Assembly (NCBI GenBank): GCA_004431415.1
Contig: QPMI01000444.1
Location: forward strand, 1-64,000
Reading direction: 5' to 3'
Length of the DNA stretch: 64,000 bases
DNA from: Cyanophora paradoxa CCMP329
Taxonomy: Eukaryota; Plantae; Glaucophyta
This document shows positions 1 to 50,200 of this stretch, piece after piece (the stretch's first letter is position 1; the number at the start of each line of letters is the position of its first letter). The position numbers and the translations under genes were made by a program. Below the pieces are notes generated by a model. It worked only from the letters and a program-made list of their open reading frames with translations, searched no databases and was not told the origin of the DNA.

Positions 1-3000
1 TGCGGCGCGTCGCCTCGTACCCGTCGCACCGCGGCATGCTGCAGTCTGCGCGCCGGCCGCTCAGAAGAGAAGAAGCAGCGGGGGCGGCGGGGGCGAGGGC
101 AGGGGCGGGCCCATCCAGAGGAGGTGGTAGGGGCGCGGGGCGGCGGCGAGGCGGGCGAGGGCCTCGAGGCCGTCCCCCGCCACGTCCACCGCGTGCCCCG
201 CCCGCTCCAGCAGCCGCCGCGCCACCGCCTGGTTCACTGCAGGGCGGCGCTGAGCGGAGCGCTGGGGGGTATGAGCAAGAGGGCGCATAAGCACCCGGGT
301 TGTCCTCCACGACGAGGAACCGGAGGGGGCGGTGCGGCGCCCGCGCGCGGGGCGGGGACGCGGCCGCCGGCTGTGCTGGGGCGGGCTCGGCGGGCCTTTG
401 GCCGGGTCCGGGACCGGGGCCCGGCGTCTGGAGGCGGCGGGCGAGCTCCGCGGCGACGGCGGCGCGGGAGACGGGCCGCCGGAGGCACGCGGCGGGGTCC
501 GGGCCCGGGCCGGCCGGCGGGGCGCGCCCGTCGCCCGGGAGGATGGCGACCAGCGGGGGGCCCGCCGCCTCCTGCGCCCCGCGTCACCCTCACTTCTCTG
601 CACCCGAGATCAAGCGCACGCACCCAGGCGGCGAGGGCGGCGGGGCGCCCCGGCAGGCGAGGTCGAGGAGGGCGCAGGGGACGCGGGCGCCCTCCCCCGC
701 GAGGCGCGCGGCGAGCGGCGCCAGCTCGCCGGCGGCCCCGCAGGGCGCGGCGCGCGCCCCCGCACCCTCCAGGAACCGCTCCAGGAGCGAGCGGAGAAAG
801 GGGCGGGCGAGGAGCGGCACGGCGACCGGGCCGGCGGTGTGCTCCGGCGGGTCCGGTTCAGGCGGCGCCGGGGGCACCCCCGCCTCGGAGCCCGGGGAGG
901 CCCCCGGGGGGTACTCCAGCGCCACGGTGAACGAGAAGACGGAGCCCTTGCCGAACTGCGACAAACATATGCATTGAATCGCGCTATATGTATTCGAATC
1001 GATAGTAAGAACATCATCCGGCACCTGGGAGCGGACGGAGATGGTGCCGGCGCCGTGCTCGGCGCTGCTCGCCGGCTCCCGCCCCGCGCAGCGCTCCACA
1101 ATCGTCTTCGAGATCGCCAGCTGCGGGCGCGAAGCTTAGACACGCTAAGGCCCGAGGCGCACGAAGAAGAAGAGAAGAGGGCGCGCCCCCAGGCCGGAGC
1201 CCTCCCAGCGGCGCGAGAACGAGCTGTCCACCTGCCCGCCCCAGCCGCCCCGCGTCAGAGGGCGCTCGACTCCTACAGTTGGCGCCAGCGGGGCGCCGGC
1301 GCCAGCGGGCCTGGGAGAAGCGCTGGAAGAGCTTGGGGAGGTCCTCCTGCTTGATCCCCACCCCGGAGTCCTCCACCTCCACCCGCACCACGCACTCCGC
1401 CCTGCGGCTGCCGTCGCCCGCCCGCGCCGCCCGGCCAGAGCGGAGCGGGGCGGACGGCGCGCACCCGACGCGGGCGACGAAGGTGACCGTGACGAGGATG
1501 CCGGGGGGATCCCCCTCCCCGCCGGCGCAGCCCGAGCTGAACTTGACCGCGTTCGAGAGCAGCTGGGGGTACAGCGTTGTCAGGGGGCGGGGGGCAGGGG
1601 GCGGGAGCCCGGGGGGTACGCGCACGTTGGAGAGGACCTGGGTGAGGCGGGTGGGGTCCCCCACGAGGCGCCGCGGGCAGCGGGGGTCCACGGCGGCGCC
1701 CACCTCCAGCCCCGCCCGGTGCGCCTGCGTTTACAGGGCGGGCGGATCGGATCGGACCAGATCAAATCGGATCGGATCAGGTGAGCGCGCGCCTGGGCGG
1801 AGGCGGCGGCGACGCAGGCGTCGACGAGGGCCTCGAGGTCGAGCTCGGCCGCCTCGAGCCTGACGGCCCCGGACTCGAGCACGGAGAGGTCCAGGAAATT
1901 GTTGATGATGCGCAGCAGGTGCTCCGCCGACTGGTGGACCGTCCGCGCCGCCTCCGCCTGCTGCTCCGTCAGCGGGCCCGAGTCCATCAGCAGCTCCGTC
2001 ATCCCTGCCGCGGCGGCGTCGGCGGCGGCGGCGGTCCGACGGTAAGCAGCGCAGGAGCGGCAGGCGCCGCGCCGCGGGCGTCGGCCGCACCGATGATGGC
2101 GCCGCAGGGTGTGCGCAGCTCGTGGCTCGTGTTCGCCAGCAGCGCGTCCTTCGCCGCGTCTGCCGTGCCGCCCCGCCGCTCGAATCAGAGCTCCAGACGC
2201 CGGGAGACCGAAGAATCAAAGGGGCGGACCGAGCATGGCGAGCTGGCGGTTCTGGGCCTCGAGCTCGCGGTTGTTGGCGGTGAGCTCCTCCCGCAGCGTC
2301 CCGTTCAGCAGTGCCACGGCGAGCTGCGCCCGGCCCGGCCCCGCCCCGCCCCGTCAGAGAGCTCTGCTTTCCTTTGCCTCGCTTTGCTTCCTCCAGATCT
2401 GGCGCGCCTGGAGGGCGAGGAGCTGGAGGAGGTCGACGCGGTCGGCGGTGAACACCCCGCCGCGCGCCGGTTCTCCAGGTACAGCACCCCCATCATCTCC
2501 ATCTGCGGCGCGCCATCATCAAAACTCTCAGAAAAAGCGAAAGGCGTGGGCGCGGCGGCGTATCTAAAAGCGACACGACCAAGGCCTGGGGCGGGGCGGG
2601 GCGTGGCAGGGTGCGGGCCTGGTAGACAACGGGGAGGGCGAGGACGGACTTTACGCCGGCCTGCCGCACGTGCCGGCAGCTCACGAAGTCCCCCTGCGGG
2701 GCTCGGTAAATAAGGCGAGGGGAAAGGAGGCGGGGCGGGCGGGGCGGGCGGCGCGGACGGCGGCGGCGGCGTTCGGGAGGCAGACGCGCTCGCCGGCGCG
2801 GAGGACGTAGTCCAGGACCGCGGGGGAGGCCCCCGCGTACTGCGCCCCGGCCCGGAATCACGAGGCGTGCTCCAAGCGAGACGGAGCGGGGCGGGCCTCC
2901 TCGAGGGGTACGTGGATGCAGCGGACGCGCGCCGAGGCGCCCTCCGACGGCGGCGGCGACGGTGAGGGCGAGGGCGAGGGCGGCGAGGGCGGCGGCGGCC

Positions 3001-6000
3001 CGCCCTCCTCCTCCACCTGCCTCCACGGGGCCCGATCAGGGGACGAAGGCGGAGAGGGGGGCGGGGCGGCCGCGCCTCGCCCTCGACGCGGACGCAGTAG
3101 CGGACGGCCGGCGAGTCGGGGGGGAGCCGCCCGGGGTCCCCCGGCCCGTGCCGGCACCGCTTGTTGCTCCGCAGCACCAGCGCCGCCGTCGTCGCCCCGG
3201 CTGCGGCGCGCGCGATGGAAGCTCGGACCGCGCCGAACGGGGGGGCGGGGCGGGGCGCGCCGTTCTCGATGGCGAGGAGGAGGAGGCGGGAGAGGAGCGC
3301 CTCGAGGTCCTCCTCGGCCGCCAGCGCCAGCGCCGTCCGCACGACGGTGAGCAGGTCCACCGACAGCGCCCCGCCGCCCCCGCCGCCCCGCGTCACAGCG
3401 AGCCCCGAGGCAGACGCAGACGCCGCCCCGGCCGCGCTGCTGCAGGGATGAGGGAGCGCGGGGGCTCCCGCGGGGGGGAAGAGGGAGAAGGACCCGGCGA
3501 CGGGCAGCGGGGAGATGGGCGACTTGCCGCTGCTCCCGCTGCCTCGGCCCCCGCCCGGCCGCGCCGGCGCCACCGGCAGCGCTGCTCGAGGGACGGGGCA
3601 TGCGCATCAGCGGCGGGCTCGAACGAGGCGGGAGGCGCGGGGGGGAGCGGTCACCAAAGAAGGAGGCAGGCCGCTCGCTGGCCTCGGAGGAGGCGGAGCC
3701 CGAGCCGGAGGCGGACGAGGCGGCGGCGGCCGCCGCGGTGGCCCGCGGGGAGCGGCCGGCGCGGCGCCGCGCAAGCATGCGTGCCGCTGGAGCATGAGCG
3801 CGACCTGGCGGGCTCGTCAGCTTCCTGTTTCTTTCTCCATTCTTCTTTGGGCGCGGGCCTTGGTGCGGGCGCCCCAGGCGGCGTAGTCGGCGAGGGCCTC
3901 GCGGAGGTAGGCCCGCGAGGCGGCGGCGGCGCCGGCGCGCTCGCAGAGGGCCGCCGCCGCCTCGTGCGCCAGTCCCGCAACATTCGGCGCGGAGACCTGC
4001 CCCCGAGCCCTGAGAGGAAGCGGGGCGGGGTAGCCGCTGGGCGGGGGCTGGGCGGGCCTCGCGCGCGGCGGCGCCGGCAGCCTCGTAGAGGGGCAGCGAG
4101 GCGAGGGCGGCCGCCGGCGTGGGCGCCAGCAGCCGGCCCAGCTCGGCCTGCGGGGCGCCGGGGCCCTCGGCGCGGGACACGGGGAGCGGGGGTACAGGAC
4201 GGACCTCGAGGAAGAGCGAGCGGCAGGTGTAGATGCGGTTGTGGCTGGCCAGGACCTGCCCGGGGCTCGCGGGGGGTACGGGGAGCGCCTCGGGGGAGGG
4301 GCGCGGACGCGGAGGTGGTCGACGGAGGCGCGCCCGATGGCGGCGGCGGCGGCGCGCTCCTCCTCCGTGAGGGCGGCGCCTCCCCCCTCCCCGCCCCCGT
4401 CCCCGGCGTCCCCCGCTGCGCCAGCTTAAAAAAGAGGAGGTGGAGGGGGGTGGGGGGCGGGGCGGACGCCAGAAGCCGAGGCGGGCGGTGAGCTCGTAGA
4501 GGCCCTCGAACCACGCGAACTCGATCCCGAAGATCATCCCCTGCCCGCCCCCGGCGCGGTGAGAGGGAAGAAGGAAATCGCAGAGTTTGGCGGGAGGGCG
4601 AACGGCGTTGTAGGGGACGACGGCGGCGAAGGCGGGGAAGGCGGCGGCGGCCTCGCGGAAGCGGCCGAGGGCCAGCAGCGTCACGAAGCGGAACGAGAAG
4701 TACGTCGCCTGCCGCCGCGGTCAGCCGGAGGAGGGGCCAGAGGCGGGCGGAGGGCGGGCCCGCATGTAGTAGCCGCGCTGGGCCGCCTCAGGTCCCATGT
4801 CGGCCGCCGCCAGCAGCGCCTCCGCGTCCTCCCCGGGCCCCTCCCCGCCCTGCGCGGGGAGAGGGTCAAGGGCGCGAAGCCCGGGGACCCGGGGAGACTA
4901 GGAGGGGCGCGCGTGTACCAGGAGCACGCTGTAGTGGCGCGAGGCGGCGACCACCGACTGCGGGGCGGGTCGTCGCCCGAGGGCGGGAGGGGGGAGGCGG
5001 GGGAAGGGGGTACGGGGCGGGACCTGCTCGAGCTCGTGGTTGACGCACTTGCGCACGAAGGCCTCGTGGCGGGCCGCTGCGGGGGCCCCGGGGGGTCGGG
5101 CCGGAAGGGGCGCGCTGGGAGCCGGGGGATCGCGCACCGAAGGCCGCGTTCTCGGCGAGGGGCTTCCCGTGGAAGAAGGAGACCCAGTGGTACTGCGGCC
5201 CCCGGCGGGCCCCTCGGCGAGGCGCGGGGGGCGGGGACGGGATCGGGGCCCGGGGGCACCTGGTTGAGGACGTAGAGGGCGTTGTTGAAGTCGCCGACGG
5301 CCGCCGATGCCGTGAACCCCGTCGCCAGCGCCGGCAGCTTCTCGCACCTGCGCCCGCGTCAGACCTCGCCCGGCGCTCGGTGCGCCGGGGGCCGGGCGCG
5401 AGCGCGCCAGGTCTCGCCCATGGGGAAGGGGGCGAAGAGGAAGACGGCGGTGCGGCCCCTGCGCACGCTTAGGCGCTAAGACGCGGGGGCCACAGGGGGG
5501 AAGGAGGTGGAGGGCGGGCGCCTGCAGAAGTCGGAGACGCCGTCGCGGGCGGAGAGGGCCGCGGCGGCCCGCACGAAGGACTCGCCCTCCTCGTACAGGT
5601 ACTGGAAGCCCTGCGGCCGCGGGGTCGCGGAGATGATCGCGCGCGGGCCCCGTGCAGGCAGCGGCGAGCGCGCTAAACAAGAGGGAACAGCGGGGAGCTT
5701 GCTGTGTGCATTCCTATCCTCGAGCGCGATTGTGCGAAACAGGCCGCGGTATGGGCTCCCTCTATCTTCCAAGGGGGCGCACGGAGAGGGAGAAGCCGTG
5801 GATGGCGAGCCAGGGGGCGGCGGCGTCCCCGCCCCGCCCGCTCTCCACGCACAGCCGCGCCACGGCCGCCACCAGCACCTGGTAGAGCTCGAACCTGAGG
5901 AAATTAGAGCAGATTGAGAATGCTGAAGCGCGGAAGGGCGGAGAAAGGGGGCCGGAGGCGGGCCTGGCGAGGAGGTAGAGGACGGGGACGACCTCGACGG

Positions 6001-7705
6001 CGTTCGTGAGGAGGCGGTGCAGGTCCCCGTCCACTTCGGCGGCCCCCTGCAGGCGCGCACGCGAGCTTAAGTCGGCGGCGGCAGGGGAGGACGGAAGGGG
6101 CGGGGCGGACGAGGGGCAGGCCGGCAAGGTCGGGCACGGCGAGGCCCCGCGCCCGCAGCGCCCCCCGCACCCCCTCGTGCGCCTGCGGCGAGCCGTGAGT
6201 GAGAGAGGCGGGCCCGCGATGTGGAGGCGCCCGGTGCCGCACCGCGGCGATCTCGTCGGGGGTCGGGTGCCCCTCCGCGCTCAGGTACACGCCGTACTCC
6301 CCCAGCATCTGGAGGGGCGTAAGAGGGGGAGAAGGGACCGAAGCTGCGCGGTGTCGCCCGCGGCACCTGGAGCCCGCAGCGCATGGAGGCCTCGAACCTG
6401 AGAAGGAGGCCGTCAGAGGGCGGTCATCAAATATTGAGGGGAGAGGGGGAAGGCGCGCTGGTTGGAGGCGGAGAGGATGTTGAGGCGGAGCCGCGCCGCG
6501 TCGAGCCGCTCCCGCCGCGTCCCGGCGCGCGTCTGCACGCTTCAGCTTCAGAGGAGGGGCGGGGAGGAGGAGGAGGGGCGAGGGCGGGGGCGCGCCTCGG
6601 CGGCGGCCAGGTGGCGGAGGGCGGCGGGGACGTCCCCGCACTGGTACTCCGCCTCCACCAGCCTGCCGGCCCCGGCCGGTCAGGTCTTTCCAATGGGATT
6701 AGCGTTCCCGCCCGCTCGGACCGCAGGAGCAGGGAGAGGGCGAGGGGCCGGGAGGCGGGGTCTCCCAGAGCGTCGTCCAGGCACGCCGCCTCCGGCAGCG
6801 GGTCACCATCCTCGGGCTCGGGCTTAGCTCCCGGACGCGGGGCCCGCAGCGCCCGCACGCCGGCCGCGAAGAACGCCCGCGCCGCCTGCGCGCGCCCCGC
6901 CCCGCCGCAGCCTCAGCCGGGCTCCTTTCCCTGGGACGTAAATCAAATAAAAGGCGGGCCTCGTAGGCGGTGGAGTCGGCGGCGGTGGCCCCCGCGCGGG
7001 CGTTGAGCTCCGCCAGGCGCCGCCGCTCGGCCGGGTCCGACACGAGCCGCTCGCCCCGGTTGTAGTGCGCCGCCAGCTCCTGCCCGGCAAAGCTTAGAAG
7101 AGGGGGAGGAAGAGCGGGGGGGAGAGGGACCTGGACGTCGACGTCGGCGGGCCCGGGCTCGGAGTCGGCCTCGGCGTCGGGGTCGGGCGCCCAGTCCGCG
7201 CCCTCGGGGCCGGGGGACGCCGGCGGCGGCGAGGGCCGCGCCTCGCCCTCGCCGCCGCCCCCGCGGGCCGCGAGGAGCCGCCGCCCGATCTGCAGGTGCA
7301 GCGCCGGCAGCTCCTCGGGGGGTACGAGGCCTGAGAGGGTTGAGAACGAAGCGAAGCCGAGGGTGCCGGGGGGTACGGGGCGCACAGGAGCAGGCCTGCT
7401 GGACGCGGTCGTGGACGAAGCGGTGCACGCCGCCCGAGGGCGAGGCGGCGTCGACAAGGCGGGAGCGGCGGGCGGCGGCGAGCGCGGCGCGGACGGCCGT
7501 CATCGGCAGGCCGGCCGCCGCCGCCAGCAGCCGCGCCCCGAAGGTGTTGCCCAGGAGGGCCGCCACCTGCACAAGGCCCGGGCGTCGGGTCTAGGGGCCG
7601 GGGCGGAGGACTCGGACGAGGGGACGGGCGCGGGCCTTGAGGGCGCGCTGGGTGCCCGGGTCGAGGTGCCCGATGAAGCCCACGAGCATGTCCACCACCT
7701 GAGGG

Positions 7706-7737
<32 letters not shown>

Positions 7738-10527
7738 CGTGGGCGCGGCGGCGCTCGGGCCCGCGCGCGGGCGGGGCGGGCGGGGCGGGGGCGGCACGTT
7801 GTCGGTGTAGCCCTCGCGCTCGATCTCGGCGACGTCCCAGCGCCACGCCCCCGCCTCCACGTCCGCCCGGATCTAATCCGGCCCCGCGTGGGCCGCCGCC
7901 GGCCCCGCCCCGAAGGACCCGACACAACGAAAGCGGACCTTGCGCTCCGAGTGGAGTGTGGCGAGGAACGAGCGGATGAAGACTGCGCGCGGGCGCCGGC
8001 TCGGGGGGAGGGCGGGTTCGAGGGGGGCGGGGCGGGGCGGGCGGGGGCGCACAGGGGTTCCCCCCCGTCTTGGCGTGCACGAGGCGGGCGAGGGGCGCCG
8101 CCGCCTCCGGCGGGCACCGCAGCGCGCTCGCCAGCAGCGCGTTCGCGTCGCCCTCGCCCAGCGGGCCCACCTCCAGCTCCTGCCGCCAGCTCGAAACTGA
8201 AGAGTGGCTGGGCGGGCGGGGCCGGGCCCGACCTCGACGTGGACGCCGCTCTCGCGGATCTCGCGCATCGCGTGCGCCACGGGGTGCCCCGCCGGCACCT
8301 GCCCCCGCCCCGCCCCGCCCCGCATCACCACTCTGCCCGATCCGCGCGCGCCGCCTGGCTGCACTGGCCAGGGCCTGACGGGGCAAGGAGGGGGGTACCT
8401 CGTTGGAGCGGAAGGCGAGGACGAGGAGGCAGCCGACGGCCGGGGAGGCCAGAAGGTCCCGGATCTGCGGCGGCGGGGCGGGGCTCAGAGACGAGGGGCG
8501 GCGCAGAAGGGGCGCGGGCGGCGCGCCAGCTTGAGGGAGGCGGGGTCCGCCCACTGGACGTCGCTGCGGGCGGGAGGGGTCGGGCGCCGGCGGCGGGGCG
8601 GGGCGGGGCGGGGCGGACTCGAGGAAGAGGACGAGGGGCCGGAGGGCGGCGAGCAGGGCGCAGAAGGCCGTCGAGAGCCGCAGCGCCGCCTCCGCCGGCG
8701 GCAGCGGCACCGCCGGCCCCAGCGGCGCCCCGGGGAACAAATGCTGCGCGGGCGCGAAGCTCGAACCTGGAGTCCAGGCCGCAAAGGAGCCGGCGGGGCT
8801 CGAACCCGGGTCTCGGGGATGAAGTCGACGAGGGCGGGGGCGCTGTCGCCGAGGGCCGGCACCGCGCGCGCCCGCGCCGCCGCCAGCCGCTCCCCGTCGG
8901 CAAGCAGCTGAGAGGGGCGCCAGTCAGAGGCGAGCGAGGCTCGGATCGGGCCGAGGCCGGCGGGGCGCGCCGAGCGGACGTGTCCGGCGACGGCAACGAC
9001 GAGGGCGCTGTAGGGCCGCGCGCAGGCCCCCGCGTCGTACTTGCCCCGCAGCAGCCCCGGCGCCCGCTCCGCCGCCCGCTCGGCGAGCTCCTCGACGAAG
9101 CCCGCGACGAGGCGCGTCTTCCCCGCGCCGCTGGGCCCCCCGACGAAGGCGGCGGCGCGGCCGGCGCGCTCCGCCGCCGTGTGCGCGTCGGCGAGGCGCC
9201 GGAGCAGCTCCTCCCGCCCGAAAAGCCTCCCGCCCAAAATAAGCACACGGCGAAGCAAAGCAGAGGAAAGGAGAGGGAGCAAGCGAGGAGGGCACCGGTC
9301 GGGGAGCTGGAGGGCGCTGGAGAAGTCGTGCCGCCCGAGCTCGAAGCCCGGGCCGGCGGGGGGCGCCTCCCCGGCCCCGGCCCCGGCCCGGGCCCCGCGC
9401 AGCACCTCCAGGCAGCGTCGCAGGTCCTCCCGCACCCCTGCGCGCTTTCAGTTCCACCGCGCCGCCTGTTTCCGAGGGCGGGGCGGGGAGGAGCGGGGCG
9501 GACCGTGGGCGCTCTGGTAGCGCTGCTCGGGATCCTTCTCCATGAGCTGCGCGCCGCGGCGGGCTTCAGAAGAGGAGCAGGGGCGGGGTCCGAGGGAGGG
9601 GCGGGGGCGACCGCGCCTTCGCCACGATGCGGCAGAGGGCCTCCGGCGCCTCCGGCCTGCGGCGGGGGAGGGAAAGGTGAGGGGGGAAGCAGGGAGAGAT
9701 GTCGGGGCGGGGGCGGCTCGCCGGAGGGAGGCGGCGGGCGGGGCGGCCCGCGCGATGTGCCCGTGGATCACGGACATGGCGTCGCCCCTGCCGCCCGGCG
9801 CGCTCGGCAGGGGCGGTCGGGCTGGGCCCCGCGAGGCGGGCGCCGGCGCACGTGAACGGCAGGCGGCCCGTCAGGCAGTGGTACAGTGTGACTCCTGCAC
9901 CGCGACCGTCGGCGAGGGGGTACAGGAAAAGAGCTACAGGAAGGGGATACCGAAGCTGTAAAGGTCCGAGCGGTGGTCCACAATGCCGTGGACGCGCTTC
10001 GTCTGAGGGGTGGGGGAGGCGTCAAGAGGGTACAAGCGCTGCCGTGAGGGGTACACACCTGCTCGGGAGCCATAAAGGCCAAGGAGCCCTCTGCGACGAT
10101 CGGGTACAGGTCGTCCGGGCGGTAAGGGGAAGCAGGGCCAGAAGGGGTACCCATCTCGGCCTGAATGTATGTGTCCTGAGCGCGCTTCCAAGTCAGACGG
10201 CTTCCACTCGAGAAAGAGGTTCATCGGGCGGGGTCGGGCGGGGGAGGGGGGTGAGGGGGGGTGAGGGGGGGGGGTAAGGAGGGGGGGCGAGGGGTACCTG
10301 CACGAATCCCGCGAGCCCGAAATCCGCCAACCTGACCTCGTCCCCCGACGCGCTCACGATAACCTGGAGGGGGGTACGGCGTTCGGGGGAGGGGCGGGAG
10401 AGTATGTGCCGAGCACGGGCTGGGCGCCCAACGCACGTTCCTGGCGCGAGGGCGTCAGGGCTGGGGCCAGGGTCGGACCGGGGCGGGAGGAACGCTCACC
10501 CTGACGTCACGTCCCTATGCACAATCT

Positions 10528-10559
<32 letters not shown>

Positions 10560-11447
10560 AGGTGGGGATGTTGCGGCCCGGCAGCCGCCCCAGGAACGCA
10601 GGCGCACCTCGCGGGCGTGAACGGAAGCGAGCGCGGACGCCACACAGACTGCAACGGGGAGGAGTCGCTCCAGAGGTACCGGACCCTCCTCCGCAACGAT
10701 CCTGTACCCGGGCAGCACGGTTACCGCGGATCCGGGGGTAGAAGGGCGGGGCGCACCGGTCCAGGGAGCGCCCGTCGATATCCTTCGGAGGCGGCGAGGG
10801 ATCAGATCGAATCAGCTCAGATCAGATCAGATCGGGGTACAGGGCACCTCGAGGACGATCGCGGCGGACTGCGGCGTCTCGACCAGCTCGTGCGCTGCGA
10901 GGCGCGCGGCGCCGGTCAGCTGGCTCTGAAACGAAGCGGCCTGGCGCGCGCGTTCTCGGTGCTCACCTCGAAGCACGTGCGGGCACGCGACCGCCGACTG
11001 CGCATGCGGCACGCGCGCGGAAAGAAGCAGTCGTCACGTCAGCGGCGCGGGTGGGCGCAGAGGCGGGGCTGGGTGCCAGAAAGCGTATCCCGGGCGCGCC
11101 ATCACTCTGAACTCGCGCCGCAGCTTCTCGAGGGACTTGGCGTCCGGCGGCTCCCCCGCGAGTTTCTTCAGCACGACCCGCGCCCCTGCGCACGCGCCCC
11201 GCGCGCGACCGTCAGGCGCGCTCTCCCGCGAGCATCGAGGCTCGCGGCGCTCATGATCACCGTCGCGCTGGCGGACGGCCCGAACCAGCGCCCGCGTCCG
11301 CCGGACGCAGAGCGCCTCCGCCTCGACGACATAGCCTGCCAGATCGTATCAGATGCGAGAGGAGTGCTCGAAGAAGAAGAGACGTGAGTCAGGCGAACCT
11401 GGGAAAGGTTGCGCGTGCGCGGCGCTTATGTGCAGCTCCAGGGCCAT
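1..11447 (-). CDS. Multi-exon hybrid Ser/Thr kinase + AAA/P-loop ATPase + GAF + histidine kinase + receiver protein (HstK-like / fungal group X HK-like); 3' end lies beyond the window
   Basis: Spliced translation from ATG 11447: MALELHISAAHAQPFPGYVVEAEAL..RVVLKKL; kinase motifs HRDVTSGN, DFG, EGSLAFMAPEQ, DHRSDLYSFG, EKDPEQRYQSA (about 11447-9400); Walker A GGPSGAGKT (about 9115-9150); LVLFLEDVQWAD; KTGGNP; RFVHDRVQQA; GAF-like SVLALPVVYQ/GVLYLEN (about 3350-2400); H-box ANTSHELRTP (about 2110-2135); HATPase_c GDPTRLTQVLSNLLSNAVKF, VEDSGVGI, GSGLGL, GKGSVFSF; receiver FLVVEDNPVNQAVARRLL..LLWMDCSMPRCDGYEATRR at the edge. Confidence 0.92.
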
Positions 11448-11994
11448 TGCGGCTCCGATAGGTCGCGGCACCGGCACCAGGATGCGTACGGGGCGTACGG
11501 GGCGTCGAACTAGTTACCTACTGCAGCCAAATGCTACAGCGAGCTTCGCGCGCCGCCACCAGCGCGCCCGGCGGTGTCAAGCTGATCCGCTTGAAACATG
11601 CAGGCCTTCGTCTAGAGTCTGGCTTGGTGTGCTAGATGCAGCTGCGAGAGAACAGCGGGACGTGCGGGAGTCGGACGTGGATTGACGAAAAAACTCGGCA
11701 AGCGGGGTACCGACACGTGAGCAAGCCGGAGCTTGTGTAGCCTAAAGCAGCCTTCCGGCCAGGCAATCGCTGGCAATAGCTGCGTATTTCCTCTACCCCG
11801 CCCGGCCCGTTTCACGGCGCTGGATCGATTCTCGGGCAGCCGCCGGCTGGAGCCGCCGTATGGATAGGAACGAGCCAGAACCACGAGACAGCAGGCCCCG
11901 ATTTCAGCTCTTCAAGCCGAGAGTCCGTGTCCGCTGCCTAACACGTACGGGCACATATGCATGCACATCAGCGCTAGCTAGCTATGCAGCGGCC

Positions 11995-14900
11995 ATGATG
12001 TTGCTCGTTGCATTCGCTCATCTTGCATCGGGAGCCTCGACGCTCTACGCCCTGCGGACCTCGGGCTCGCTGCGCTTCGACGTGAGTACGCTTAGGCTCG
12101 CGGGACGCGCCCCCGCAGACGCCGTGCCCGCAGATCACGTTCGCGCCGCATCCAGATGTGACGCGCTTCTCGATTTACCCCGTTGCGCCTCCCTCCCTCG
12201 CCAGCAAACGCGGGCTCCGAACTAATCCGAGCCGGCGCCTCGAGCCCCGAGGCCCGGGGCGCGCGCCTGGGGCTGACCGGGGCCCCCGCAGCGATACGTC
12301 GGCGCGTGGCCCGAAGGGAGCGTGCGGGGCGACCCCGCCATCGTGCGCCGCGCCCGGTGCGAGCGGCCTTCAGACCTGACCCAGCGAGGCTCCGCGCAGG
12401 CTTCGTTCTACGCGCTGACGGTCGCCGGCGTGCCGGGCGGGAGCGGGCGCAAGACCTTCCAGCTCGATAACATGCCCGTGCGGCCCCGGCCCGGCGCGGC
12501 CCCGCCACGCGCGCCCCGGCAGACGACCCTCACCGGCAGATCGGGCTCTACAACTTCTCGGCGAGCGACGCCCGCATTTCATTCCTCGCGGGGCCCCAAA
12601 TCGTCCTCTGGACCCGTGCTTGATCCCCGCCCGCTCCGCTTCGGCTCTCCGCTGCGGCCTGATCGCGCGGGCAGCGGAGGACTGCGCCGCGACGCGGCTC
12701 CCCTGCACGAGCGCGGGCGTCACGTACCCCTCCGGCGCCGCGATCTCCGAGCCGCCGGAGAACGGCGTCGCCATCTGTAAGTCGCTCTCCCCCCTCCTCC
12801 CCCTTCGGGTCTGAGCGCTCGGGCGGGCAGCGCTGCAGGCGACGCGGCAGGGGCCCAACTCGCAGACGGTCCTCCAGCCGGCCCTCGCCTCGGGCTCGGG
12901 AACCACGAGCACCGGCGGCGGCAGCAGCAACCCGGGCCCGCCCGGCTCCATCCGGGGCGACCTGCTGGTGCGCGCGAGCCCGCCGGCGAGCGCCGACCGC
13001 GGCCGGCGGCGCCTAAAACGGGGCGGGGCGGGGCCAGCCGGTGGCGGTGGGGGCCGGCCTCGGCGGCCTCGCGGTCCTCATCGCCGCCATCATCCTCGCG
13101 TGGCGCGCCCCGCCGGCTCTCCCGCCCCGCCGGCCCGCCGGCCCGCCCCGGCCGACGCGGCGGGGCGGGGCGGGGCGCAGGGTCCTGCTGCGCCGCTCCA
13201 GGAGGGCACGCGCCACAGCCCCCGACGACCCCCGTCCGCCCCGCCGGCCCCTTGAGCGCCGCCTCGCCCCTCACGCCCCGGCCGCTGCAGCGGGGCCCAA
13301 GCCGGTGGACCGCCACCTCGACAGCTGTGCGGTCCCGTACCCCCCTCTCCTCCGTCCCGGCCCCCCCGACGCGCGCGGCAGCGGCGCCCAACCCCGGTGC
13401 CTTCATGGCGATGCACCCCGCCTCGTCCCTGCCCCTCTCCGCCCTCGCCGAGCGCTCCGGCTTCCCCAGGCGGGCGTACCGCCCTCCCGTCCGCCCGGCG
13501 CCGGCCCCTGAGCGGCCAGCAGCTCGGTCTGCGTGGCGTGTGGCGGGGGCGGGGGCCCCCTCCCACCCGACGAGAACGCCGAGAGCGCCGCCTGCGCCGC
13601 CTGCCGCGTACCCCTCGCCGTCCAGAGGCGCTTCTACCCCCTCGCCCGCGTCGGCGGCGGCGAGTTCGGCACAGTCTTCGTCCGTGACCCCGCTCCGCGC
13701 CGCGATGTGCCGCGTACCCCCGCCTTCACTGATTTCGCGTACCCGGCAGCTCGCGGTCGACCTGCACTCCCCGTCGAGCAAGCGCTGCCTCGTGAAGAAG
13801 GTGGGAGAAGAGAGATTGTCCCCCGCCCCTCCGCATCCGGTTCGAATCCGCGCGGGGACAGTTTTCGTACTTCAGCCGGAACAGCAACGACCACCTCATC
13901 GCCAAGGCCGCCGAGCTGTTCCTCGAGGAGGCGAGCCGAATCGCTGTACCCCGGGCTCTTTTGTTCCCCCAGCTCACGGGTACCCCCTCAGGGCCGCGTG
14001 CTGGAGCAGCTCGCCCACCCGCGCATCCCGAAGCTCCTCGGCTCCTTCCAGTGGCGGGTTCGAATCCCCGAATGTGCCCTTGCTCCCCGCCCGCGGCTCG
14101 GCCGACGCGTTTCCCTCCTTCGACTACCCAGGGAGACCTTTTCCACGTGATGGATTTCGTGCGCGCGACCTTCGAAGTCGCTGTTTTTTGGGCCCTCCAG
14201 CGAGCCGCGCCGGCAGGTGCCCGGGCGGGACCTGCAGCGGGCCTTGCGCGAGTCCTCGGGACCCTTCCCCGAGGCCGAGGTGCTCTACCCCCTCCTCTCT
14301 TGCCCCCCCCCCGGTCGAGCGGGAACGGGGGTACAGGTGCTGCGGCTCCTGGACGACCTGCTGGGGGCCCTCGAGTACGTCCACGCCACTCGCGTCCTGC
14401 ACCGCGACGTGCGCTCTTGTGCTGTACCCCCCCTCCAGATTCCCCCACCCCTTTCGCTGATCCCGTGCACGTGACCGGCAGGTCAAGCCCTCGAACATCA
14501 TCGCTGGGGACGACGGTGCGAGGCCGTACCCCCGCGAGCCATCCCCGTACCCCTTCCTCGACCGGCCCGGCAGGGTACTACTACCTGGTGGACTTCGGCC
14601 TCTCGGCGACCGTTCGCCCGGACTGGCAGCAGGCGACTCAGATAGGGACGTACGCCTACGCCGACCCCGAGCAGGCGGGCGCCCCTGTACCCCCCACGGC
14701 TTCTCGCGCCTCTGATCGCGGCGGCGCGGAGCAGCGCCGGGGGTACCCGACGGAGTCGTCGGACCTGTTTAGTCTGGCGGCGACGTGCGTGGAGCTGCTC
14801 ACGCGCGCACTCCCGACGAGCGAGTACTTCGTCGACTGGCGACCCAGTGCGCCGCTCCGCGCCCCGTCCGCGCTAGCTAGCTGCGGCCGACGCCCGCCTC

Positions 14901-15380
14901 CGACGCGCGCGCAGCGGCGCAGCTGTCGATCGGGGCGCCTCTGGCGGGGGCCCTGGAGCGAATGCTGGCCCGGGCCCCCGCCGCCCGCTTTGAGTCGGCG
15001 GCCGCCGCCCGCCGCGCCCTCGCCCCCGCCCTCGAGCGCCTGGGCCCCCGCGCCCCGAACCCCAAGGCCCTTCTCGGGCCCCTCAGCTCCAACGCCGACT
15101 CCAGCTCCCAGGCGCGCACGCGTACCTCCACCCCCCACGCTCGCCGACGCCCTCGAAATTTGAATTAATATTTAAAACCTCGGACCGGCATGCGCAGGTG
15201 CTGGTGGAGGAGCTGAGCGGCGAGCTGGCCTTTCGGGCCGGCGGCGACCCCACGAGCTCGGCCCCCATCTACATCCTCCCGTCCGCCTCCGGATCCGCAC
15301 CCGGCGCGCCTGCGCCCCCTCGTGGCGCTGCCGAGGGGTGGGGGCCCGCGCCCGCGAAGGCCCGCCTCGCTCAATCATGA
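11995..15380 (+). CDS. Multi-exon single-pass receptor-like Ser/Thr kinase: signal peptide, ectodomain, TM, CxxC..CxxC zinc ribbon, bacterial/cyanobacterial Pkn2-like kinase domain
   Basis: Signal-like MMLLVAFAHLASG; TM VAVGAGLGGLAVLIAAIILAWVLLRR (about 13040-13200); CVAC..ENAESAACAACRVPL; kinase VGGGEFGTVFLAVD, RCLVKK, AAELFLEEGRVLEQLAHPRIPKLL, HRDVKPSN, LVDFG, GTYAYADPEQ, SDLFSLAATCVELLT; stop at 15380. Confidence 0.88.
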
Positions 15381-47240: not shown

Positions 47241-50200
47241 TCAGCGCTCGGCGGCGGCGGCCTCGCCCGGTCCCGGGGGGGCCACCATGCGCGCCCTGCG
47301 CGCGCCCCGTCTCAGGAAGAGCAAGCATTCGAAGGCTTGAAGCCCGAATTCTTCAGGGGGTGCGGACCGCCCGAAGTGGCTGATGCGGACCGAGCAGGGG
47401 GCCCGCTGCACCCACGCCTCCCCGTCCGCCTGCCCGACTCGCTGGCTCACTGGGGGGAAATCTGAAGGAGGCCGGGGGCGCGCGGGGGGCGGGCCTGGAG
47501 GGCGGCGGGACCGCAGAAGGAAGCTGCGAGGGAGATCGAGGTGCCCTGCCCGGCGGGCGGTCAGGCGGGGCGCCGGCTGGGCGGAGTGACTCCCGGCCGC
47601 CCCAGCCCCGGGCCCTCACCTGAGCGAGGCGGATGGCGTGCTTGAGGCGCATGTGCGCCAGCGCCTGCCGACAAGGTCAGAGGAAGGGGGCGGGAAAGGG
47701 GCGGGGCGGGGCGGGGCGGGGCGCGCCAGATGGACGGGGCCCAGCAGGGCGACTACCTCGAAGATGCCGTCCCCGATCTCAGCCGGCCGCAGCCGCCGCC
47801 GCGGGGGCGGCGGGGGCGGCGGGGGCGGCGGAGGCGCCGCCGAGGGTCCCGCGGGGGCCCCGAGGGGCCGGCGGAGGGCGGGCGGGCGGGGGCTGGGCGG
47901 GGCTCCAGAGGGCGGGCGGGGCGGGGGCCGGGGCCGGCGGCGCCGTCGGGGCCCTCCCCCTCGCTGCACTCCGAGCTGCAGCTGGCCCCGGCGGGGCGGC
48001 GTCCTGCGGGCCCGCGTGGGCGCCCCGCCCCGCCCCGCCCCGGCGCGGTGAGGCGGGCGGGAGGCTGGCGCACGCGTAGGGCCGGGCGGGGGCGGCGGGG
48101 CCTGCTCGGGGGCCGCCGCCGCGTCCACAGGTCGAGCCCCGCCGCGTACGACGGGCTGCGCCGGCGGCGTCGGCGTCGGCCCGGGAGCTAGATTCGATTC
48201 GATCCCTATGGCGAAGGGATGCGGGGCGGGGCGCACATGTTGCAGATGACGAGGGCCCCGGTGGCCGGCGGCACGGCGACCGGGCGGCCGTCCACGCTGC
48301 GCGGCGGCGGGGAGGTGGTGTTGGGGCGGGAGGCCGGAGGGGGCCGGCGGAGGGGCGGAGGGGCTCGCCTCAGCGTCAGGAAGGAGCCGAGCTGCGTGGG
48401 GCAGCGCTGCGAGCGCACCCGGCCGGGGCGCGCCGGCCGGGCCGCGCCGGAGCCGGCCCCTCCCCCGTCCCCCTCCGAGTCCCCCTCGTAGTCGACGCCG
48501 GCGGCGGTGGCGCCGCAGGGCGCCGGCGGGGGCGTCGGCGCCAGGATGCCGCGGATTCCGTAGTGGATGTACCTGAAGGCACGGTGATGGATTGGGGGAG
48601 GGGGGGGGGGGGAAAGGAGGGTGGGTACGCGAGCTTGTTGAAGAAGCGGGTGGACATGAGCCCGGGCTGCCGCTCCCGCAGGGCGTGGAAGTCCAGCGTC
48701 ACCTGTACCCCGGGGGGGTGAGCCGGGGGGGCGGGGGCGACCCGCGCGGGCTGCCGAGCCTGAGCGTCGAAGCCTGCGCAAAGGTCGCTTCATCGCCGGC
48801 GCGGGGACGGGCGGGGTACACACCGATGCTGAAGTAGTTCTGGAAGACCCGCCTGGAGAGCAGAGACGTCGGCGGGGGTACCGGGGGCTCGCGGGGTACG
48901 GGTCGGGGTACCGAACGGGGTTCGCGGGGGCCGGGGCGAGCGAGTCCGATTCCACGAGCCAACTGAGGGGCACATGGTATTGAGCTGGCGCGAGGGTACT
49001 GCGGAGGTCAGGGGTGCGGCACGGCACCGGTCGAGGGGTACGAGGTTCTTCGAGAGCGATGCCAGGCGCGCCTTGCGGACCACGTCGCGGACCTAAACGG
49101 GTACAGGTTTCAAACGGGGTAGGCGGAGCGGGCTTTGGCGGGGGAGGAAGGGGGGGCTACCGTACTGCAGGTAGTACCCCAGCCAAGAACCTGGAGTAGC
49201 GGCGCGCGGCGTCGGCCCGCGAGCTCGCGGGGGGCGATGGTGCAGGCTAGAGGGGGCCGGGGGGGCGCGCCCGCGCGAGGTCGTTGCCTGTACCCAGAGG
49301 GATCGGAGCCACCTGGCGGGCGCAGGCCAGCAAGTCAGCACAGGCGGTGGGAGGGTCGGTGCGGCGCGGGCGGGCATCGCACGGGGTAGCGGGCGCGGCG
49401 GGGACGCAGCGAGTCGACCAGCTGGTTCATCCAGGCGACCGAGCTGCGCGCGCGGGGCGGGCGGGCGCGCGTGGGCGCGCCGGCGGCGGGCGGCGCGGGA
49501 GGAGGCGCGGGGGCGGGCGCGCCCGTCGCCGCCGCAGACGACGACGCGGAGGCCGTCCACGTGCCGCAGCGCATCGAGCCTGCCGCGAGGAGGGGCGCGA
49601 GCGGTCAAAGCAGAGGCCAGGGGGATTGAAGTCGTGTCGAAGTCAAGAGAGAGGCGGTCGTGGGCGGCTCACCCCGGGGCGGGCGGCGGCACGGGGACCG
49701 CCGAAGACGACCCCTCGCCATCGTGGGCCTGCAGCAGCCGCGCGCGGGGGTCGTCCCGCGGCGGCGCCGGCGGCAGCCCGGCGTCCGGCTCGCGGTCCTT
49801 CGCGCGGTTCCCGCGAAACTCAGCGCGGGGCACGGAGAGCTGCGCTGTCGCTCGCCCGGGCGCACGAACGCGAGGCGGGGGCCGCCCGGGCCGAGGATGA
49901 AGATCTGCGTCACGAAGGGGAGCTCGCTCTGCGAGGGCGGTGAGAGGCCGCGCGGATCGAAGGGAAGCGGGGCACAGGAAAGCACCAGAGCGAGGAGAGC
50001 CTCCTCGCCTGCGCGGTTCCCGCTCCGATAGTTCACGAACGCGGCAATCGGGGCGTACTCGGCCGGAGCCGCGCGGGGCGCTGTGGGCGAGGACGCGTCA
50101 CGCGCGCGCAAAGTTTCACGCGAACGCATTGCACGCGAACTTGGCGCGGTCGCGGACGCGACCTCGGGGCGGCGCGCGGGACGACGCACCGAACTCGACG

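Follow-up and report, generated by a model that had tools for sequence, protein, structure and literature searches.

Contig QPMI01000444.1 of the glaucophyte Cyanophora paradoxa CCMP329 (GenBank assembly GCA_004431415.1) carries, at 11995-15380 on the forward strand, an intron-rich gene for a putative receptor-like serine/threonine kinase, which was analysed within positions 1 to 64,000 of the contig (64,000 nucleotides, hereafter the window). GC content lies between 0.62 and 0.79 over most of the length of the window and short introns are densely packed; the Cyanophora genome paper gives 67.6% GC, a mean of 9.2 introns per gene and a mean intron length of 86 bp (PMC6704402). The public model of the gene, tig00020684_g12847.t1 (650 amino acids, hereafter P0001), was retrieved with a stop-free genomic query running through three kinase exons, the same query returning two Cyanophora proteins from EukProt. 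P0001 maps exactly to 11995-15380 (+) and is identical to a scripted translation of the spliced exons; later protein searches were performed with P0001.

The gene comprises 23 exons, all on the forward strand, separated by 22 introns of 52-110 nt, every one of which ends in CAG (17 GT-AG and 5 GC-AG). Exon 1 (11995-12081) was read from the sequence as a start codon followed by a short hydrophobic, signal-peptide-like N-terminus, MMLLVAFAHLASGAS. Exons 2-7 (12134-12967) encode the predicted ectodomain (residues ~30-193), delimited with the help of a paralogue alignment (A2) and a low-confidence AlphaFold2 (AF2) model, while exon 8 (13038-13102) encodes the putative transmembrane (TM) helix PVAVGAGLGGLAVLIAAIILAW (residues ~194-215; hydropathy peak 2.62 over 19 residues). 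A predicted cytoplasmic juxtamembrane linker (exons 9-11, 13181-13469; residues ~216-273) leads into exon 12 (13523-13679), which carries the four-cysteine (4-Cys) motif C277xxC280-x17-C298xxC301 and the glycine loop GGGEFG. The kinase catalytic domain, delimited by the Pfam Pkinase match, the columns invariant in alignments A1 and A5 and the AF2 model, occupies exons 13-22 (13750-15111), and exon 23 (15198-15380) adds a low-complexity Pro/Ala-rich C-terminal tail—not conserved among paralogues—and the stop codon.

GC content by codon position is strongly structured in the P0001 frame (third 0.92, first 0.69, second 0.57), and the TM exon and the three linker exons (exons 8-11) have third-position GC (GC3) values of 0.89-1.00. 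A preliminary description, drawn up from the letters of the DNA, had reported an intron-rich gene here and quoted peptides from it; three-frame translation recovered all of these peptides and the 22 introns could be mapped. CVAC..ENAESAACAACRVPLAVQRRFYPLARVGGGEFGTVF falls in a single exon at 13523-13679, LAVDLHSPSSKRCLVKK at 13750-13800, ..AKAAELFLEE at 13862-13930 and GRVLEQLAHPRIPKLL at 13992-14057. The gene at 11995-15380 is thereby confirmed as real, far beyond chance. Exon-by-exon Pfam scans gave only sub-threshold Pkinase matches (E 0.015-0.22). Bacterial contamination was considered as a source and ruled out by the 22 spliceosomal introns and the eukaryotic GC3 structure.

The GC-AG introns start at 13103, 13470, 13931, 14675 and 15112 with the donor GCG[ACG]GC, five out of 22 being a high share; two of them, at 13931 and 14675, are supported in that the spliced protein is exactly colinear with cyanobacterial kinases. 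Several introns have a length divisible by three and are stop-free in frame, for example intron 3 (57 nt, 12343-12399), and retention of such introns would preserve the reading frame. Spurious long open reading frames (ORFs) abound on both strands, with 48 of at least 250 amino acids in the 64 kb.

The sole strong hydrophobic peak of P0001 spans residues 190-222, with a helix at ~194-215 (Kyte-Doolittle 2.62), and is followed by the basic stop-transfer sequence RRSRR, encoded in exon 9. The single TM helix read earlier ahead of the kinase is borne out by this lone peak, a feature also present in all the Cyanophora paralogues described below, and by its basic flank. Since RRSRR follows the helix, the C-terminal part is predicted to be cytosolic under the positive-inside rule. 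On the other side of the helix, the ectodomain consists of a stretch predicted to be beta-rich (residues ~16-110), a Cys pair (DC..LPCT) and a Ser/Thr/Gly-rich stalk that extends to ~190. Hydropathy plots reveal N-terminal hydrophobic leaders that are clear in the paralogues P0002 and P0003 and weaker in P0001. As predicted from its sequence, P0001 is probably a type I single-pass membrane Ser/Thr kinase with a signal-like leader and an outward ectodomain.

Exon 12 starts three residues ahead of the first Cys of the 4-Cys motif, and all four Cys are invariant across the five Cyanophora proteins. The Pfam Pkinase match covers residues 315-516 (E 6e-34) and the catalytic set is complete: GGGEFG (318-323), K342 (in VKK), E366, HRD (440-442), N447, DFG (460-462), DPE (484-486), D497 and R549 show no variation among the paralogues, as expected of a catalytically complete Ser/Thr kinase of the Hanks type and of the RD (arginine-aspartate) class, which is how P0001 is predicted to act. 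Potential phosphorylation sites in the activation loop (S464, T466, T475 and T479) are conserved. AF2 modelled residues 270-565 from 40 aligned sequences with a mean predicted local distance difference test score (pLDDT) of 89.4 and a predicted template modelling score (pTM) of 0.88; the 4-Cys part reached pLDDT 80-95 and the activation loop alone was poorly defined. The top Foldseek matches to this model were ordinary Hanks kinase domains (PknB of S. aureus and M. tuberculosis, PknA, human Myt1), and PknG with its rubredoxin-like domain (2pzi_B) was also matched.

A count of Cyanophora paralogues with the same architecture gave four besides P0001—P0002, P0003, P0004 and P0121—making five proteins on four contigs, all in the order signal-like leader, ectodomain, TM helix, linker, 4-Cys motif and kinase. 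Identity to P0001 is 60-68% in the 4-Cys-kinase region and 23-39% in the ectodomain, and the length of the juxtamembrane linker differs among paralogues. A tblastn search of the window with the kinases found no further copy; the kinase domain of the upstream neighbour emerged from GC3-guided reading. P0121 (tig00021038_g17581.t1; 1188 amino acids) has a low-complexity Pro/Ala/Ser/Gly tail of ~490 residues after the kinase, which may reflect an over-extended gene model, and shares its contig with P0002 (g17554), 27 gene numbers apart.

Relatives of the kinase module were sought through an exhaustive HMMER search of 1.84 billion representative sequences followed by rescoring per domain, because multi-kinase proteins inflate whole-protein scores. 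The paralogues scored 364-452 bits per domain and behind them stood a block of about 40 proteins (147-178 bits), each an N-terminal 4-Cys kinase that begins with a motif of the type MSYCLNP.C...N......C..CG..L...RYR...IGQGGFGRTFLAVDE.KPS.P.CVIKQF; named members of this block were all cyanobacterial (Leptolyngbya, Leptolyngbyaceae, Pseudanabaenaceae and two Cyanobacteria metagenome-assembled genomes, MAGs). Named cyanobacteria as a whole scored 95-178 bits per domain, Chloroflexi 88-131, Myxococcota 75-107, and Actinobacteria and Planctomycetes 89-95, so that bacterial phyla other than cyanobacteria reached at most 131 bits. Eukaryotic kinases reached at most 81 bits, a bird PAK-like kinase scoring 73 and a plant kinase (P0120) 44.5; the best solved structures, bacterial and eukaryotic (RSK2, Aurora A and StkP), scored 77-81. 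In a search of proteins of 163-518 amino acids with a profile built from the five Cyanophora proteins, named matches down to E 1e-38 were exclusively cyanobacterial (Gloeocapsa, Spirulina, Microcoleus, Synechococcus PCC 7335, Anabaena and two cyanobacterial MAGs), Microcystis, Nostoc and Chloroflexi lay just under that value, and eukaryotic entries were absent from the matches.

The cyanobacterial signal is visible only in the exhaustive search, the per-domain rescoring and the profile search. A first, word-indexed search ranked, below the paralogues, proteins from various bacterial phyla (31-41% identity), with no evident cyanobacterial signal, and neither the sequence search of solved structures nor Foldseek separated bacterial from eukaryotic kinases. 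Four matches to P0001 from a contig search (Blautia and others) were weak (27-32% identity) and were set aside as unrelated kinases.

The cyanobacterial N-terminal 4-Cys Hanks kinases ('MSYCLNP.C...C..CG..L...RYR...IGQGGFGRTFLAVD') resemble P0001 at 34-39% identity over ~275 residues and share with it a 4-Cys element that adjoins the kinase with no spacer, as well as the motifs FLAVD..PS...C.(I/V)K, KAAELF..E...L..L.HP.IP.LL, HRD(I/V)KP.NII, (I/L)VDFG, G(T/S).xYxxPEQ and SDL(Y/F)SL..TC..LLT. In alignment A3 the second CxxC is invariant and the first Cys nearly so, there is no gap between CxxC and the glycine loop, and the distance from the last Cys to the first glycine of that loop is 17 residues in Cyanophora and cyanobacteria alike. 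The two sides differ in the first Cys pair, which is CxxC in Cyanophora and Cx4C in cyanobacteria, and in the loop between the pairs, which is longer in Cyanophora. They also differ in setting: the cyanobacterial module forms the extreme N-terminus of its protein, whereas in Cyanophora it stands behind a leader, an ectodomain and a TM helix, in a gene with 22 introns. The cyanobacterial relatives probably fall within cyanobacteria-specific families of the bacterial serine/threonine kinase (bSTK) atlas such as Cyan1/Cyan2.

A phylogeny of 50 kinase cores was built with IQ-TREE under LG+C20+F+G4 with posterior mean site frequencies (PMSF), with the zinc-ribbon columns excluded and the fragment P0269 left out. 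The five Cyanophora proteins fell into a clade with 100/99 support together with 21 of 21 named cyanobacterial kinases, two unnamed receptors with the order kinase, TM helix and periplasmic binding protein (Synechococcus PCC 7335 being the sister of one) and a Polyangiaceae MAG; outside it lay Chloroflexi, Planctomycetes, Actinobacteria, Sandaracinus and the eukaryotic comparators. The Cyanophora family was monophyletic (100/100), and a quick 120-row tree gave the same picture. Forcing the Cyanophora proteins to group with the eukaryotic comparators cost 21.4 log-likelihood units and was rejected in an approximately unbiased (AU) test (p 0.0025). The preliminary description had proposed a cyanobacterial-type 4-Cys and kinase module that groups with bacterial rather than eukaryotic kinases; both proposals were upheld, the second for the eukaryotic kinases available for comparison, given that the named best matches are cyanobacterial, the second CxxC and the spacing are kept, the 100/99 clade and the AU test agree, and the best match in the Protein Data Bank (PDB) reaches 81 bits. 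Its term 'Pkn2-like' is a loose label, the tree having held two myxobacterial sequences—Sandaracinus, outside the clade, and the Polyangiaceae MAG, inside it—neither of which is Myxococcus Pkn2. The zinc-ribbon-kinase module is in all likelihood of cyanobacterial descent, as judged from these sequence comparisons, and would have been acquired by endosymbiotic or horizontal transfer.

The order of parts in the Cyanophora proteins is the reverse of that in their bacterial relatives. Seventy-six proteins from outside Cyanophora scored at least 130 bits per domain. In all 76 the glycine loop lies before residue 90, and in 69 there is a 4-Cys motif just upstream of it; a TM segment is predicted after the kinase in 25 and before it in none. 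The Cyanophora order must be called reversed because all of these relatives have an N-terminal kinase and none a preceding TM helix, which upholds the earlier statement that in cyanobacterial kinases of this type the kinase comes first and any TM or sensor region follows. Sensors found downstream of the kinase in the cyanobacterial family include WD40, GUN4, TPR and periplasmic binding protein domains, and the nearest neighbours, P0249 and P0007, read zinc ribbon, kinase, TM helix and periplasmic binding protein. According to the bSTK atlas preprint, bacterial Ser/Thr kinases carry their TM segment C-terminal to the kinase, and just one of the 42 bacterial families has it on the N-terminal side, in the eukaryote-like manner (10.1101/2025.01.12.632604). 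In P0001 the 4-Cys motif, which begins at residue 277, lies behind the TM helix (194-215) and not at the extreme N-terminus that characterises the cyanobacterial family. Exon 12 starts three residues before the first Cys, at the point where the bacterial ORFs begin (MSYC...), a position that fits a putative fusion at the old bacterial N-terminus. The apparent descent of its catalytic module places P0001 in the cyanobacterial zinc-ribbon kinase lineage; its architecture does not.

These results are probably best explained by a zinc-ribbon kinase of cyanobacterial descent that was rebuilt into a type I receptor-like kinase, now present in at least five paralogues. Several observations weigh against this explanation. 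P0001 is an Augustus/BRAKER prediction of a kind needing curation (PMC6704402), and the protein databases searched held no transcript-derived copy of it. Residues 1-15, a signal peptide candidate on the strength of their hydropathy, form a short N-terminus devoid of a basic n-region. AF2 rendered residues 16-108 as an all-beta structure with low confidence (pLDDT 45), so that the fold is not reliably modelled, and no ectodomain relatives were found outside Cyanophora, a feature search of the ESM Atlas giving no usable match; with a fold that could not be modelled and no such relatives, no ligand can be proposed. The 4-Cys element is best described as zinc-ribbon-like: no Pfam zinc-ribbon model matched P0001 at E<=1, and we infer zinc binding from the Cys pattern only. 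Eukaryotes were represented in the tree by four rows (the bird PAK-like kinase, one plant kinase and two unnamed sequences), the Cyanophora stem is long (0.77), and branching inside the cyanobacterial clade, including the position of Cyanophora, is poorly supported. Finally, Met252 and Met254 of P0001 lie ~23 residues before the first Cys, making a separate kinase ORF conceivable.

That last point bears on the rather unlikely scenario in which the gene model fuses two genes, a small secreted or TM glycoprotein (exons ~1-9) and a cytosolic zinc-ribbon kinase whose start would be Met252/Met254 (exon 11). The two Met residues would lie near the bacterial start position, and the gene set is automatic—BRAKER/Augustus models trained on RNA-seq data—with further manual curation called for by its authors (PMC6704402). 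The same order of parts nevertheless recurs in all five paralogues on four contigs, and the models of P0003 and P0004 lack any Met in the stretch from the TM helix to the 4-Cys motif. Furthermore, only ~420 nt separate the TM exon from exon 12, and this distance is taken up by three exons with GC3 of 0.89-1.00 and four typical short introns, leaving no room for a terminator and a promoter. The paralogue order, the lack of a Met in P0003 and P0004, the GC3 of the linker and the short gap argue for one gene rather than two.

A fused protein might instead be routed to the cyanelle envelope, the thylakoid membrane or endomembranes, and signal inside the organelle, a fate in keeping with a kinase module of cyanobacterial descent. 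Glaucophyte transit peptides carry an N-terminal Phe motif, and the N-terminus of P0001 (MMLLVAFAHL...) is an atypical signal peptide that contains Phe. We nonetheless regard this routing as unlikely: P0002 and P0003 begin with long hydrophobic stretches that resemble signals for the endoplasmic reticulum rather than hydroxylated transit peptides, and the Ser/Thr/Gly-rich stalk and the Cys pair of the ectodomain suit a protein of the secretory pathway. It is highly improbable that the bacterial resemblance misleads, either because an old, fast-evolving eukaryotic kinase converged on the cyanobacterial pattern or because cyanobacteria received the family from eukaryotes. The long stem, the small number of eukaryotic comparators and the similar scores (~80 bits) of bacterial and eukaryotic kinases among solved structures would be compatible with such an account. 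It is opposed by per-domain scores to cyanobacterial members that are twice those of any eukaryotic kinase, by the common 4-Cys element with its exact spacing to the glycine loop and by the shared motifs PS..C.VK, KAAELF, HP.IP.LL and SDL.SLA.TC..LLT; the family is also broad in cyanobacteria, Cyanophora is the sole eukaryote among the top matches, and the AU test goes against a eukaryotic grouping.

In its predicted type I plan—leader, ectodomain, TM helix, juxtamembrane segment and cytosolic RD kinase—P0001 resembles the plant RLK/Pelle receptor-like kinases (RLKs) and animal IRAK, but RLK/Pelle kinases have no 4-Cys element and IRAK4 is a generic fold match at 20% identity. The 60 best sequence matches among solved structures included neither an RLK nor an IRAK, and an RLK/Pelle-IRAK lineage for the kinase was rejected on the plant kinase score of 44.5 bits and on the AU test against plant and animal comparators, in which RLKs were thinly sampled. 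Seven RLKs of the RLK/Pelle type have been reported in Cyanophora (PMC10868138).

Among bacterial kinases, PknG of M. tuberculosis likewise has a 4-Cys module of the metal-binding type directly N-terminal to a bacterial-type kinase; unlike P0001 it is soluble, with a C-terminal TPR domain, and it is no more than a remote relative in sequence (20% identity in the fold alignment). The rubredoxin domain of PknG has a regulatory role on its kinase. PknB and StkP, the PASTA receptor kinases of Gram-positive bacteria, are single-pass membrane proteins whose signalling proceeds through dimerisation and autophosphorylation of the activation loop. These Hanks kinases gave the best structural matches to the P0001 kinase (4eqm, 5u94, 1mru), but they have the opposite orientation (kinase N-terminal, sensor C-terminal) and no 4-Cys element. 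Assignment to the PknB-type PASTA kinases was rejected: the NCBIfam model PknB_PASTA (NF033483) gave 90.6 bits against a cut-off of 450, and no PASTA domain was found.

In the history that we favour, a module from the cyanobacterial family would have entered the nuclear genome of the glaucophyte through endosymbiotic or horizontal transfer, gained ~11 introns there and been placed behind exons that encode a secretory leader, an ectodomain and a TM helix; duplication of the fused gene would then have produced the five or more paralogues. The protein may sit at the cell surface or in an endomembrane as a type I receptor. Binding of an extracellular ligand, ligand-driven dimerisation or clustering of ectodomains could juxtapose the cytosolic kinase domains and allow autophosphorylation of the activation loop (S464, T466, T475 and T479), as in PknB-type and eukaryotic receptor kinases, after which the active kinase would phosphorylate cytosolic substrates. 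The zinc ribbon might cap the N-lobe and serve there in regulation or dimerisation, with PknG as the nearest precedent.

The window has a further signalling gene and other sequence features around this locus. The upstream neighbour lies on the reverse strand (~300-11300), head-to-head with the receptor kinase gene and separated from it by ~550 nt (11450-11995). Its exon pieces, picked by GC3 periodicity, amount to a multi-domain signalling protein with a Ser/Thr kinase (VVLKKL at 11085-11192, DFG at 10298-10375, subdomains IX-XI at 9478-9895), an AAA_16 domain with the Walker A motif GPSGAGKT (8983-9237; Pfam E 2e-11), a GAF-like part (2428-2708), a HisKA H-box SHELRTP (2068-2184), a HATPase_c domain (1272-1700) and the start of a receiver, FLVVEDN (299-358), all on the reverse strand; this order of kinase, AAA, GAF, histidine kinase and receiver is typical of bacteria. 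The motif GTACCC(C) clusters in introns, on the coding strand, at 13337-14687 (+) and, as the reverse complement, at 10028-10372 and 48814-49099. In the receptor kinase gene nine of 13 copies are intronic, often two to an intron, and their distance to the 3' splice site varies; the motif might serve in splicing as an intronic signal or be a relic of the spread of introns.

To our knowledge, eukaryotic receptor kinases are thought to have arisen few times, each from a eukaryotic kinase lineage, and our literature search found no description of this family or of any cyanobacterial-type receptor kinase. There is perhaps an even chance that glaucophytes have a cell-surface receptor Ser/Thr kinase class of their own, in which a zinc-ribbon kinase from the cyanobacterial endosymbiont, or from a later cyanobacterial donor, stands behind a eukaryotic leader, ectodomain and TM helix; such a class would have originated independently of the RLK/Pelle, TGF-beta-type and tyrosine-kinase receptors and would be the first built on a catalytic domain of bacterial lineage. 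We know of no function for the accessory 4-Cys element, even in cyanobacteria, and the five paralogues offer a tractable family in which to probe the role of the zinc ribbon. At this locus a prokaryotic signalling module, its membrane topology inverted, seems to have been redeployed as a eukaryote-style receptor, which would exemplify how genes derived from an endosymbiont or another bacterium can feed host signalling rather than plastid metabolism.

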